A stretch of 64,000 nucleotides of DNA from Zygnema circumcarinatum SAG 698-1b (Eukaryota > Plantae > Zygnematophyceae): NCBI GenBank assembly GCA_037447605.1, contig CM074806.1:4216001-4280000 (forward strand), written 5' to 3'. The stretch's first letter is position 1; each line of letters starts with the position of its first letter. Both the position numbers and the translations under genes were made by a program. Under the pieces are notes generated by a model. It was given only the letters and a program-made list of their open reading frames with translations. It had not been told where the DNA came from and did no database searches. Positions 39,285-44,687 of this stretch are shown here, one piece after another.

Positions 39285-42200
39285 ATGAATCGCATTCATC
39301 GAACCGATAAGCTTGTGTTGTGCAGTCTCTATTGGCTGCTTTCTATTCTCATTATCTTTTCACATTCGACTGGAACAAACTGTAAATTCATTGACAGGCA
39401 GAGACCTGCTGAAAATAGCACAAGTTTGCCCTTGAAAAATAGGTATGAGCTGAGAGGGTCCGGTTTAACGGAAGCAGTCGTTGGAGAGGTCACATGTTTC
39501 ACAGTCAGTTCGTTAGATCATAACGGAAAACCGTTGAACCATCTCCCAGCGACAATTTGGCGCGCATTTCTTTTGGATAGGGTTTCTTCATCGAAGAACA
39601 GCACGAAGAAAATTTCAACAAATGTTGAATATCGGGAAAAATCGAGGGATCACAATATTTGTTATTTGATTAGGGAGGTGGGCAATTACACTTTGTTCGT
39701 TTATTTGGAGAGCGAATTGTCGAAGGCATTGGAAGAAGCTCGCGGGCGAGCGGAGCTGACTTATGATGACAAGCATGTTTTAGTGAAAAAGTCGACAATT
39801 TTAGTGAGAGAGAGGGTGGGAGATGGTGGCAGACGGGGGAAGAGAATGGAAGTTGGAAATTGTACAGCAGAAGGATTAGCGAACAGCCACAACCGCTTTG
39901 GATTTTGGGAAGGTGAGTGGCCTTAGAGATTCATATAGTAGTACGAAAGAACCCCCCTCTCTCTCTCTCTCTCTCTCTCTCTCTCTCTCTCTCTCTCTCT
40001 CTCTCTCTCTCTCTCTCTCTCTCTCTCTCTCTCTCTCTCTCTCTCTCTACCCCCCTCCTTTTCTTCCCTCTCCCCCTCTCTCCGCTTTTCCCCTCTCACT
40101 CTCTCTTCTGGCTCTCTATTCCTGTGCCGTATTGCCTCTCCCATTCCCCTCTCTTCTCCTTTCCCTCCTTCCTAGCCCTTCCCCTCCTACCCCCCCTCTC
40201 GCTCTCTCTCCCTCTCTCACTCTCTCACACACACCTCCCTCTTTTTGTTTCGGTTTCCTCTCTTGGAAGGACAGGTAGCGCCTACCACCCTGCTGATTGC
40301 CGTCTACGTGACACATCTTCAGAGGAAGCGATGATGTGCTTGGAAGGGAAAACCATCGCAGTGTTCGCCGACTCCAATTTAAAGCTTTGGCTCTCAATTT
40401 TTGTCACATTTTTGGGAAAAGATTCGGTTGTTGGAGAGACGCAAGAAGACGAAGATTACATCCGGCAAGCGTACGAGCTCGCATGGAGCGGAACGGAGTA
40501 TAGAACAGGCATAGAAACTAACAACGAGTTTAATCCCGCGAAAGGAAAAATACCCTTTTTAGACCTCAGATTGTCGAGAAGGGCAAGAGTGGAGCTTTTT
40601 GGGAGTGGATGGGATGGGTACGGACGGGTTGTTGTCGAGGCTCCATGTAAGAATCAGTCAGATGTTGTAATGTGGCTGTTCTCTCATGTAGATGCGAGTC
40701 GACCCTTGTTCACGAAGTGGATGGAGAGAGGGGAGAGGAGTGGGAGGAGGTGGTTGGGATGGTGGACTTATTTCGATCATGTGATAGCCGGGAGGAGTGT
40801 GTGGGAGGCAAAAGAGTTTAAGGATATTTCAAGGTTTAAGAAGGGGGTGGCTAAGTATATGAAGGCGTTGAAAAGGTGGAGCAGAAGGCCGGGCAAAAGC
40901 GGAATGGTTTGGTTGGGGAGACACGCAGTGCAGCAGGAGGGGAGTGAGGGAGTGAGGGAGAGGGAGAGGACGGAACGGATGACGGAGGACGCATGGAGCC
41001 TCGCACTTGACAAAGCGTCGTTTGAGGTGGGTGGGAGGAGGGGAAGTGAGAGGGAAGGGAGCTTCTCTCTTGAGTGGGTGGGAGAGAGGAAAGAGAGAGA
41101 AAGAGGAGGGAGCTCCTTGTTTGAGGTTGGTGGGAGAGAGGAGAGGAGAAAGGAGGGATCTTCTTTGTTGACGTGGGTGGGAGGGAGGAGGGAGAGAGAG
41201 GAAGGAGCTTCGTTTTTTGAGGTGCGAGAGGTGGACGGATGTGTGGTTAGATGAGACAAGCAGGGAGGAGAGGAAAGGGATTGTGACAGTGAGAGGTAGA
41301 TGAGGCGAAGGCAAGCGAGAGTGAGAGAGAGAGGGGGGGGGGGGAGGGAGAGAGGGAGGGAGTGAGACAAGAAACGGGGAGGGGAGAGAGGAGCGCAGAG
41401 AGACTAGAGCAGTTATGTTTATCTCTACCTCCTCATCTACCAATGCATGTCTCTCTTTCTTGCTCCCTCTCCCTCTCCCTCTCACACAGGTCGCTTCCAG
41501 CTTGGGCATAACATGGCTGGACATGAGACCCATAAGTGAACTGAGACCAGATCTTTGCATAGATGGGAGCCACTATATGAAGCCGGTCTATGAAGCCGTT
41601 ACGCAAATTTTACTGGGAATTTTTTGTTCGCCGGATTCACTAAAAGGCTTTTCGAAATGCTCAAAAGACGAACCGGCACTCCCTACAGTTGAATCGAAAA
41701 ATGTGACCACAAATGTGTCAAAAGTCGAGGACTCAGTGAAGGAGGAATGGGGAGGGGGGTGGGAGGGAGGGGGGGGGGAGGAGATGGACCTGGAAGCTTT
41801 CGAAAATATGAGAAGTAGCAATAGGAGGACAGGAAATTCGACAAAGGTGGGAGAGAAGGAGGGGGAGGAAGGGTGGCCATCAGCTGAGCAGCTTGAAAAA
41901 GTGAAGGACAGATCCGGGCTGCCCGGAAGAAGGAAAACTTTTACTTCCTTAGAAGATTTGAGAAAATACCTAAAGAGGGCCTCATTTTCCAATTCCACGA
42001 AAGCAGGAAACCGAACGTTTGAAGGTCCCGAAATTGACAATGTGCGGATTTGGCGATTGAAGAGCTTCCATGCAGGTGCTGAAATCGAGTTTGCGAGAGC
42101 GGTAAAACTGGATGATGTGGTCACGAAATTAGCCATTAAAAGGTGTGTGAGTTACCGAACTGACTGCGTGAACCGCGGAAATTACCGTTCAGATTGCCCC

Positions 42201-44687
42201 ATGATTCCAAGTTTATTCGATGCAGTGGCAGCCGGAGTTTCCGAAAGATGTGAGCGTTGGTGTCCGGGGGTCATGTCCTGCTACGAAAACAACAAACGAG
42301 CTAACCGCACACTCGTAAAAGTGGTACTTCGCAACAAAGTGAAGATCAAACGCGCCCCCTTTGTGGCCTACTTCTCCAACGTACTGATTTCGAAAGTCGG
42401 CGACCTCTACAACGACGCCTTTTTCCTCGACGTGCGCGCTGAGTGCTACACTCCGCCCTCCGCCCCCTCGCGCTTTTCGCAGCGCGTCGACGTGACAGCC
42501 GCGCTGGAGCGCGCGCACCGGAGGGTGTACGTGGCGGACGGGATCGGGACCGACGTGTACGCGACAGTGGTCACGGGCCTCGTGCGGATGATGCCCTATT
42601 ACAAGAGGCTGCTGGCGGACCCGACCATCATGGTTCATGTCAGAGGTATTTGGGGATCTCTCTCTCTCTCTCTCTCTCTCTCTCTCTCTCTCTCTCTCTC
42701 TCTCTCTCTCTCTCTCTCTCTCTCTCTCTCTCTCTCTCTCTCTCTCTCTCTCTCTCTCTCTCTCTCTCTCTCTCTCTCTCTCTCTCTCTCTCTCTCTCTC
42801 TCTCTCTCTCCTCTCTCTCTCTCTCTCTCTCTCTCTCTCTCTCTCTCTCTCTCTCTCTCTCTCTCTCTCCTCTCTCTCTCTCTCTCTCTCTCTCTCTCTC
42901 TCTCTCTTTCTCTCTCTCTCTCTCTCTCTCTCTCTCTCTCTCTCTCTCTCTCTCTCTCTCTCTCTCTCTCTCTCTCTCTCTCTCTCTCTCTCTCTCTCTC
43001 TCTCTCTCTCTCTCTCTCTCTCTCTCTCTCTCTCTCTCTCTCTCTCTCTCTCTCTCTCTCTCTCTCTCTCTCTCTCTCTCTCTCTCTCTCTCTCTCTTTC
43101 TCTCTCTCTCTCTCTCGTGCTCTTTCTCTCCCTCCCCTTGTCGCACACACTCTCTGCCTTCCTCCCTTCTCTCCCTCCCTCCCTCCTCCTCTTCCTCTTC
43201 CCCCTCCCCCTCCTCCCCTCCCTCCCTCCCTCCCTCCACCTCCCTCCCTCCCTCCCTCGCCTCCCCCACTTTCCGCCCCCTCCCTCCTTCCCTCCCTCCT
43301 CCTCCCTCCCTCCCTCCCTCCCTCCCTCCCTCCCTCCCTCCCTCCCTCCCTCCCTCCCTCCCGCCCCCCCCCTCACCCCCTTGCCCTGGGCGGTGCGGTG
43401 CGGTTGCAGGGTACGAGGGCGGGCAGGGCGCGTACCCGCACTTCGTGGGCGGCATGCTCCGCTTCCTCGGCATCCGCCCGGCCTCGCGCGTGCTCGCGCA
43501 GGACGTGTTCGCGGGCGAGGCCGTCCTGGCGAGCGCGCCGCCCTGCCGCGCGCCCTTCGGGGGCCGCGAGGCCGCGCACCTCCGCCTGCTGCGCGCCGCC
43601 CTGCATGCGCGCATGGCCCGCCGCCGGGGCCCTGAGGGGAAGGGGGAGGGGGAGGGATATGTGCTGCTCGTGCTCAACAAGTGGCACGGCCAGGTCAGCA
43701 CGGAGGGTCTGTGGGGGGGGGTGTCTTTGGGGATTGGCAGGCGCTTGAATATGTTGGTATTTGTTGATGGCGTTTCGATGTAAAGGGAGGGTTAGGGAGC
43801 CCACTGTGGGGACGGAGCCAGTAGGAGAATGCGAGCTTTGAGGAGCTTATGTGAGAGTTGCCAATGCACGTCACGCTCCCCCCGTCGAAACCTTTGCGAG
43901 GCACTATGCTACTGGGTTGGCCCAGTAGCATAGTGCCACGTGGCATGGGTTTGTTTTGGCTATCGCAAAAGGCCGATTCACGTTGACACGTGTGGGGATC
44001 AAGTCTCGTGACGGTGAGACCGTGGGTATTCACACGGTGTGAACGGTATCCATAGCGTGTCAGGTACATTGGCACCTCGGGGTTGTGCATTGCATGTGTG
44101 TGCAAGATGTGTGGTGTAATGTTCGGAACGAACTCTGATGCTTTATGTCTATGTGTGGCAGCATGACAAACATTAGAGTTTCGCTAAAAAAAAATAAGAG
44201 ACGGAACTGTGTGTCCCCTGAGCAGGTGAGCAACCACGAGGAGTTAGTCACGTACATCAAAGCGATGACCAACCGCAGCGTGGAGGTGTACGTAGACGAC
44301 GGCGAGCACAACGTGCGCGTGCTGTGGCCCCTCTTCTACCGCGCCAGCGCGGTGGTGGGCACACACGGGGGCGGGCTCGCGCACATCGTGGCGTGCCGGG
44401 AGGGCACGCCCGTCCTGGAGTTCATCCAGCCGTACACGCGCGCGCGCAGCCCCGCGAGCGCGAGCCTGCAGGGGGAGGTCCTCGCGACCGCGCTGGGCCT
44501 CCCGCACTACAGCATGGTGCCCGCCTTCGCGCGGCCCTCCGAGGAGGGCGCGGACGGGGACGCGCGCTTCGAGGTGCACCCGCGGCGGGCGGCCTCGCGG
44601 GTCGCGCGCATGCTCGCGGAGGCGGAGGGGCGGGAGGACTGGCGGAGGGACGCGCACGTCTTCCGCTTCACGGGGCCCGCCACGTGA
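39285..44687 (+). CDS. Secretory-pathway fusion protein: signal anchor + filamin/Ig-like domain + SGNH (PC-esterase/NXPE/TBL-like) domain + GT61 (DUF563) glycosyltransferase, 1,093 aa; exons 39285-39912, 40275-41026, 41490-42645, 43410-43693, 44226-44687
   Basis: Hydrophobic N-terminus (LVLCSLYWLLSILIIF), filamin-like G.GL..AVVGEVTCFTV..Y...EVGNYTLFVYL, FWEG/SAYHPADCRL, IAVFADSN, and DGSH; then the GT61-type FYRASAVVGTHGGGLAHIVACREGTPVLEF. All introns are GT-AG and exons sum to 3282 nt, in frame. Confidence 0.85.
42658..43115 (+). repeat. (CT)n microsatellite of ~450 bp in intron 3 of the fusion gene
   Basis: Direct reading of the sequence. Confidence 0.95.

Follow-up and report, generated by a model that had tools for sequence, protein, structure and literature searches.

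In the genome of the streptophyte green alga Zygnema circumcarinatum SAG 698-1b, a stretch of 64,000 nucleotides (nt) (GenBank assembly GCA_037447605.1, contig CM074806.1, positions 4,216,001 to 4,280,000 of the forward strand; hereafter the window, in whose numbering all positions are given) carries at 39285-44687, on the plus strand, a gene for a protein of 1,093 amino acids (aa) in which an esterase-like and a glycosyltransferase-like module are combined. The product is a predicted type II secretory-pathway protein composed, in this order, of an anchor, a filamin-type immunoglobulin-like (Ig) domain, an SGNH domain of the NXPE/PC-esterase type, a linker and a domain of the GT61 fold (GT-B). 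The union of the SGNH and GT61 modules in one chain is real, and the layout is common to related algae. As to the function, sequence and structural models lead us to predict, with a probability of about 0.55, that the SGNH module is a working glycan O-acetyltransferase or esterase, while the GT61-derived module, though conserved, would be non-catalytic.

The gene consists of five exons separated by GT..AG introns; joined, they make 3,282 nt with a single terminal stop. The first-pass annotation, made from the letters alone, had proposed five exons and one 1,093-aa open reading frame (ORF), and the same number follows from the introns and frames. The parts of the gene are as follows.

Exon 1, 39285..39912, plus strand: start codon, short cytosolic tail, signal anchor (aa 9-28) and filamin-type Ig domain (aa ~56-142); evidence from the ORF, the GT donor and Pfam.
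Intron 1, 39913..40274, plus strand: GT..AG, mostly (CT)n microsatellite; evidence from the sequence and from transcript contigs, which resume at 40273/40275.
Exon 2, 40275..41026, plus strand: most of the NXPE/PC-esterase-like SGNH domain, including block I (FADSN), whose Ser243 codon lies at 40373-40375.
Intron 2, 41027..41489, plus strand: GT..AG, interrupts the SGNH domain; evidence from the transcript junction and read depth.
Exon 3, 41490..42645, plus strand, SGNH part: block V, with Asp485 at 41562-41564 and His488 at 41571-41573 (DGSH at 41562-41573).
Exon 3, 41490..42645, plus strand, remaining part: glycosylated low-complexity linker, Cys-rich region and the whole GT61 N-lobe, with DVYATVVT at 42552-42575.
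Intron 3, 42646..43409, plus strand: GT..AG, about 450 nt of (CT)n and then a CCCT-rich tract; contigs of two runs end at 42646.
Exon 4, 43410..43693, plus strand: predicted start of the GT61 C-lobe, with N935 at 43676-43678 and G939 at 43688-43690; evidence from frame, splice sites and the mapping of the orthologue P0001.
Intron 4, 43694..44225, plus strand: predicted, GT..CAG; evidence from the acceptor context and the lack of an insertion relative to homologues.
Exon 5, 44226..44687, plus strand: predicted rest of the GT61 C-lobe, with THGGGLAH (His987 at 44364-44366), GTPVLEF and the stop TGA at 44685-44687.

The fusion is not an artefact, because intron 2 splits the SGNH domain, block V of this domain shares exon 3 with the GT61 N-lobe, and exon 3 is continuous in RNA. 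It had been argued before, from the presence of DGSH and the start of the GT61 region in the exon 41490-42645, that the choice of splice sites could not have created the fusion, and the transcripts bear this out. Six public runs from three studies contain the stretch, with reads placed on 40060-42650 only. In run X1, contig 6 (1,865 nt) comprises 855 nt of upstream sequence followed by 40273..41024 joined directly to 41488..41745; since 'ag' flanks both sides of each joint, the true junctions are 39912|40275 and 41026|41490, and, the contigs being spliced, the runs are RNA. In run X2, which belongs to a different study, contig 11 spans 40273..41024, and contig 14 (2,093 nt) runs unbroken over 41488..42646 and 934 nt further downstream. 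The read depth is 42-67 in the exons versus 0-12 inside intron 2. Exons 1, 2 and 3 are joined in spliced mRNA, as attested by contigs of two studies. A donor of exon 2 at 40927 was replaced by 41026 on the evidence of the transcript contigs.

Both X1 and X2 cease to match at 42646, the donor of intron 3. Since a k-mer contig is unable to cross 450 nt of (CT)n and the match ends precisely at this donor, the additional 934 nt of contig 14 should represent exons 4 and 5 and the 3' untranslated region (UTR); the two exons require 745 nt plus the UTR. The junctions 42645|43410 and 43693|44226, lying beyond the end of read placement at 42650, are predicted from the frame, splice sites and homologues. 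For the last of them we prefer the acceptor at 44226, as judged from the splice context and homologues: it is preceded by a pyrimidine tract and reads CAG|G as in the other introns, and homology to P0001 begins at 44223. The candidate acceptor 44199, which would give 1,102 aa, was rejected; its context, AAG|A, is rich in A, it would insert nine residues that all homologues lack, and no homology extends over 44199-44225. Two further observations concern the transcripts. Ahead of the exon 2 acceptor the X2 contig has 1,186 nt, so that it reaches about 558 nt upstream of the start codon (~38700-39284); the 5' leader is therefore long, or there is a further exon that is not translated. In the linker, a G-rich low-complexity tract encoding GGGWEGGGGEE (41730-41790) breaks the X1 assembly between 41745 and 41761 and is spanned by X2.

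With exon 3 as the query, HMMER, run exhaustively over 1.84 billion representatives, retrieved only seven proteins. P0001 (1,102 aa) matched exon 3 over its full length (2.2e-101) and is ~45-48% identical across the exons; it is encoded on an intronless transcript contig of 3,747 nt and has Filamin, NXPE4_C and GT61 in the same order as in the window. In tblastn against the window it matched the same five exons in order, its aa 4-224 corresponding to exon 1 and aa 856-951 to 43403-43699; the same search revealed no paralogue of the gene elsewhere in the window. Mesotaenium endlicherianum ME000365S06136 (P0002, 1,046 aa) contains Filamin, NXPE4_C and the GT61 N-lobe, and leaves the homology after 'IMIHVR', exactly at the position of window intron 3; its C-terminus is probably mis-annotated. 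Two models of Spirogloea muscicola (P0003, SM000165S02196, and P0008, SM000075S21994) have their first residue where exon 3 would begin, so that they open within SGNH block V (DGLHY). Their N-terminal part seems to be missing, the public models apparently going wrong at the points of the window introns, and Spirogloea probably has the fusion too. In P0004, encoded by transcript L002 (run SRR9302961; L002:1-260), the surrounding SGNH tail is kept and DxxH is lost, with KYRS in its place; an acceptor-like 'cccccaacag|G' just before the point equivalent to the start of exon 3 and an in-frame stop upstream indicate that L002 may be a partly unspliced transcript. Three matches from Chara braunii are GT61-only. 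In this search, close relatives of the GT61 N-lobe came only from Zygnematophyceae-type algae and Chara, and word-index protein searches with exon 3 within its stop-free ORF, with the whole P0001 and with the SGNH alignment found P0001 only, or nothing. The first-pass annotation had called the architecture unfamiliar from land plants, and indeed no close land-plant counterpart turned up; its proposal to look for the same architecture in algae was fruitful, P0001 and Mesotaenium carrying it and Spirogloea probably so.

It is highly improbable, then, that neighbouring NXPE-like and GT61 genes were joined by mistaken splicing, read-through or assembly. Fusions predicted from sequence are, as a rule of experience, often wrong, and exons 4 and 5 lie outside the read placement; against this, two studies' contigs contain the junction 41026|41490 and the unbroken exon 3 in which block V and the GT61 N-lobe meet, the intronless orthologue transcript encodes the whole chain, and the stretch between the two modules contains neither a stop nor a start signal.

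All the protein features recorded in the first-pass annotation (anchor, N-glycosylation sequons, filamin domain, ADSN, DGSH and the GT61 motif) were found again. The hydrophobic anchor occupies aa 9-28. Twelve NxS/T sequons were counted on the 1,102-aa splice variant, none of them among the nine that set this variant apart from the 1,093-aa model. The Filamin domain (Pfam PF00630, aa 56-142) scores 25.9 bits (E 1.8e-5), just under the cut-off of 26.9, and that of the orthologue P0001 is above it at 29.5. The combination of Ig and SGNH domains had been recognized as the layout of NXPE/PC-esterase proteins, with which the NXPE matches described below agree.

The assignment of the central module to the SGNH/PC-esterase superfamily is well supported, and its sequence makes it likely to belong to the NXPE subfamily rather than to the TBL proteins. 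Its sole esterase family match in Pfam is NXPE4_C (PF24536; E 2.2e-4, 21.3 bits vs a cut-off of 27), which is confined to the start of the profile (positions 1-46, or about the first 50) in the region of block I; PC-Esterase (PF13839) gave no Pfam match in the window protein. In a language-model search the nearest cluster was NXPE3-like (score 0.93). The family profile aligned CL.GK.IAVFADSNLK of the window with CLKGKLIYLLGDSTLR of NXPE1 (PDB 9PJA), weakly (E 1.5), placing Ser243 on NXPE1 Ser355, the proposed nucleophile of this sialic-acid O-acetyltransferase (bioRxiv 10.64898/2026.05.20.726592). Single-sequence phmmer searches with both P0001 domains against the PDB yielded no match. The catalytic candidates are Ser243 of FADSN and the Asp and His of D485-G-S-H488, and, judging by conservation, the set Ser243-Asp485-His488 appears intact: the window retains the Ser and DxxH, as do P0001 and Mesotaenium, whose SGNH domains are 40-50% identical to that of the window, and DxxH is found also in Spirogloea. 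The GDS signature reads ADS in the window and P0001 (Gly to Ala) and is canonical in Mesotaenium (FGDSS); the Arg of GDSxxR is Lys in the window.

Structures were predicted by AlphaFold for P0001 from shallow alignments. With its SGNH model, a VIA wide search retrieved XOAT1 first (Z 8.9, 175 residues aligned) and then about 40 SGNH/GDSL esterases, and an ESM-atlas shape search gave a PCED1A-like cluster first, with template-modelling scores of 0.49/0.58.

The GT61 fold and family of the C-terminal module, about 440 aa long, are clear from concordant matches of several kinds. Pfam PF04577 is found in exon 5 alone with 32 bits vs a cut-off of 27, and in P0003, P0004 and P0005 with 37-56 bits; the family profile against the PDB matched POMGNT2 (1.4e-6) and EOGT (1e-3). 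The model of the C-terminal 503 residues of P0001 has a predicted local distance difference test (pLDDT) value of 64, with 80-90 in the C-lobe; Foldseek assigned it to POMGNT2 (8.5e-12), and VIA-align superimposed it on the same enzyme with Z 17-18 over ~300 residues of both lobes, the next fold reaching 11.4. All 60 of the 60 language-model neighbours of the module are GT61 (score 0.97). In the domain checks suggested in the first-pass annotation, PF04577 exceeded its cut-off and the AlphaFold model, made for P0001, led Foldseek to POMGNT2; PC-Esterase was absent from the Pfam results, and Foldseek returned noise for the SGNH model.

Three motifs are considered hallmarks of GT61 enzymes (PMC13123520; bioRxiv 10.1101/2025.07.18.665579). 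In NxxHxxxD, the Asn binds the phosphates of uridine diphosphate (UDP) and the His is the proposed base; in RxxxRxxxN, two Arg bind the phosphates and constitute, together with that Asn, the N-R-R constellation; the third motif is HGAxxT. Substitution of Ala for the Asn or either Arg abolishes or strongly lowers the activity of POMGNT2 and EOGT, and the His-to-Ala change lowers that of EOGT (same sources). The described variants of N-R-R (G/F/Y-R-R) all retain both Arg (PMC13123520). In a gapless family alignment, the three motifs read as follows, in this order.

Chara, GT61-only: GPYHELAD; RTHRRRITN; HGAGLV.
Spirogloea: GPFHAVYE; NPWHRRVAN; HGSALA.
P0001: DVYSVITS; NKWHRKIED; YGGGLS.
Window: DVYATVVT (D815-T822, with A818); NKWHGQVSN (N935-N943, with G939); HGGGLA (from H987).

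In the window protein, the Asn, the His and the Asp that define NxxHxxxD are all replaced, as are the two Arg of RxxxRxxxN; of HGAxxT it preserves the His and Gly, with Ala instead of the Thr, P0001 having Tyr for the His. In the second motif the other fusion members show NxxxR and Chara RxxxR, and Spirogloea retains the His and one Arg. The register of RxxxRxxxN is confirmed by the HMMER alignment to POMGNT2 (FSRTQNRLILNE), and Gly939 lies inside exon 4, so that its assignment is independent of the choice of the intron 4 acceptor. The residues equivalent to NxxHxxxD are located in the model at the start of a strand-loop-helix, where N163 and H166 of POMGNT2 are expected. Between the window and P0001, the two GT61 lobes (55% and 52% identity) are the best-conserved parts of the protein, followed by the SGNH domain (50%), the Ig region (34%) and the linker (33%), which argues that the GT61 domain has been kept for some function.

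We suppose that the protein acts in the secretory pathway, probably in the Golgi. By analogy with NXPE1, XOAT1 and CASD1, the SGNH domain would be acetylated at Ser243 and hand this acetyl on to a hydroxyl of a sugar in a glycan of the wall, the mucilage or a glycoprotein; alternatively, it would take such a group off. The GT61 domain, in which neither the UDP-holding Asn/Arg/Arg nor the proposed base His is left, would no longer transfer sugar from a UDP-sugar; it would probably bind the acceptor glycan or a partner and so target the acetyl-transfer domain. In an ancestor of these algae, an active GT61 may have been fused to an acetyl-esterase and lost its catalysis afterwards. This order of events is suggested by the graded series of motifs (intact and unfused in Chara, half intact in Spirogloea, fully degenerate in the window). 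More tentatively, and with a fair measure of speculation, the GT61 domain may have evolved into a non-catalytic module that recognizes glycans and on which the substrate specificity of an NXPE-type O-acetyltransferase depends, or may transfer sugar without the N-R-R donor site.

Several points weigh against a working esterase combined with an inactive GT61 domain. On the window's own exons both NXPE4_C and Filamin remain below their curated cut-offs. It is P0001, and not the window protein, that was modelled, and its SGNH model is poor (pLDDT 55) owing to an alignment of six sequences and to the small number, three, of full sequences; with this low-confidence model the Foldseek matches were small GTPases, that is, noise, and the Z of 8.9 for XOAT1 is barely above the common background. 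The equivalence of the N-lobe motifs is based on the gapless alignment to Chara and the secondary structure of the model, not on residue-level superposition, and a profile of the GT61 N-lobe only found no match in the PDB. The intron 4 acceptor is a prediction from splice context and homology. The strong conservation of GT61 is compatible, finally, with an enzyme whose donor site is unconventional.

The first-pass annotation had suggested a bifunctional Golgi enzyme, in which GT61 adds a sugar side chain to a polymer such as xylan and SGNH attaches acetyl groups to it or removes them. Both folds are indeed present in one chain, the GT61 domain is its most conserved part, the HG of HGAxxT and the downstream Glu of GTPVLEF are retained, and the Spirogloea relative has kept the His and one Arg. 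We nevertheless consider this function unlikely, since every residue of NxxHxxxD and RxxxRxxxN that binds UDP, or would serve as the base, is replaced in the window; in POMGNT2 and EOGT, Ala at any of the N-R-R positions destroys or greatly reduces the activity, and the described variants preserve both Arg (PMC13123520). The connection to xylan is unsupported and, as drawn from TBL and from the GT61 enzymes of xylan synthesis, holds at the superfamily level only: the searches point to an NXPE-like, not a TBL-like, SGNH module, and published trees contain no charophyte orthologues of XAT/XAX (PMC6566377, PMC5902652). It could also be supposed that neither module has catalytic activity and that the protein serves the secretory pathway or the wall in a structural or lectin-like role, considering the change of GDS to ADS, the Lys in place of the oxyanion Arg of GDSxxR, the Pfam scores below the cut-off and the degenerate GT61 site. 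This seems quite doubtful to us, as the Ser nucleophile and the Asp and His of DxxH persist in the window, P0001 and Mesotaenium, the last of which has a canonical GDS, and as NXPE1 works even without the block V Asp (bioRxiv 10.64898/2026.05.20.726592). The reading that we prefer thus remains an active SGNH module accompanied by a GT61-derived domain without transferase activity.

Some features of the locus deserve mention apart from the function of its product. The repeats of introns 1 and 3 extend over 39958-40049 (about 90 nt of perfect (CT)n) and 42657-43370 ((CT)n, then CCCT-rich); the (CT)n repeat reads through as a stop-free ORF of 777 aa (41415-43748), which could mislead ORF-based gene calls. 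The guanine-cytosine (GC) content of third codon positions rises from ~0.45 (aa 1-720) to 0.9-1.0 (aa 780-1093), the step lying inside exon 3 and the GC-rich region at 42330-44687. In the orthologous transcript L001 it is flat at ~0.4, and the identity between the window and P0001 is unchanged across the step, which may be a sharp isochore boundary or one of GC-biased conversion within a gene. Long ORFs flanking the gene (30000-39280 and 44700-54000; e.g., 46474-47850, 458 aa) had no Pfam match; many of them, situated in sequence rich in GC or in repeats, are perhaps not genes.

Both modules are of known kinds, and their combination was not found described: the open-access literature that we searched yielded no account of a PC-esterase, SGNH or NXPE domain fused to GT61, which is not proof of novelty. 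In land plants, O-acetylation of glycans and their side-chain glycosylation are performed by separate proteins, and how the acetyltransferases of the PC-esterase superfamily choose their polymers is poorly understood. The coupling of an NXPE-type acetyl-transfer domain to a GT61-derived one, conserved in Zygnematophyceae-type algae (the Zygnema window, the P0001 transcriptome, Mesotaenium and probably Spirogloea), provides a test case for a former glycosyltransferase as the targeting module of an acetyltransferase. The graded loss of N-R-R and His, from the intact Chara through the partial Spirogloea to the window, offers in turn a means of testing what has recently been put forward as the hallmark of active GT61 enzymes. 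The green lineage, too, has the NXPE architecture, here with another partner domain; in the human colon this architecture has lately been linked to the acetylation of sialic acid. If the GT61 domain does recognize glycans, a glycosyltransferase would have become a domain that binds carbohydrates, conserved in those algae that are the nearest relatives of land plants; if it transfers sugar without N-R-R, the hallmark of active GT61 would be overturned and the protein would be a genuine one-chain enzyme that glycosylates and acetylates.

Among the known systems, the TBL protein XOAT1 (ESK1, PDB 6CCI) resembles the window protein in the GDS-type Ser with the DxxH triad, the type II Golgi topology and the O-acetylation of glycans, features that on the window side are predicted. 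In contrast to it, the window protein has no PF13839 match, and no TBL N-terminal lobe was detected in it. TBLs are single-domain enzymes that act with RWA and AXY9. With the GT61 enzymes (POMGNT2, EOGT, SbXAT and the plant XAT/XAX/XylT) the window shares PF04577, the GT-B fold, HG..L and the downstream Glu motif, but it is devoid of their UDP-binding N-R-R constellation and proposed base His. Precedents exist for fusions of either module: in CASD1/Cas1p a PC-esterase is fused to an acyltransferase with ten transmembrane segments, and Dictyostelium PgtB is a multi-glycosyltransferase protein with a GT61-like domain (PMC2824669, PMC13123520). The partners in these proteins are different from those in the window, and neither of the two pairs a PC-esterase with GT61. 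PC-esterase domains following filamin-like Ig domains were noted in 2010, with no glycosyltransferase fusion described (PMC2824669). From the animal NXPE proteins (NXPE1, PDB 9PJA) the window protein differs in its filamin-type N-terminal domain, that of NXPE being neurexophilin-type, in ADS for GDS, in large insertions, in the block V Asp (DGSH), which NXPE1 lacks, and in the GT61 domain that follows, found in no described NXPE. Common to both are the N-terminal beta-sandwich succeeded by a PC-esterase/SGNH domain, the place in the secretory pathway, predicted for the window protein, the context of the block I Ser (CL.GK.I...DS.L) and the C-terminal catalytic His.

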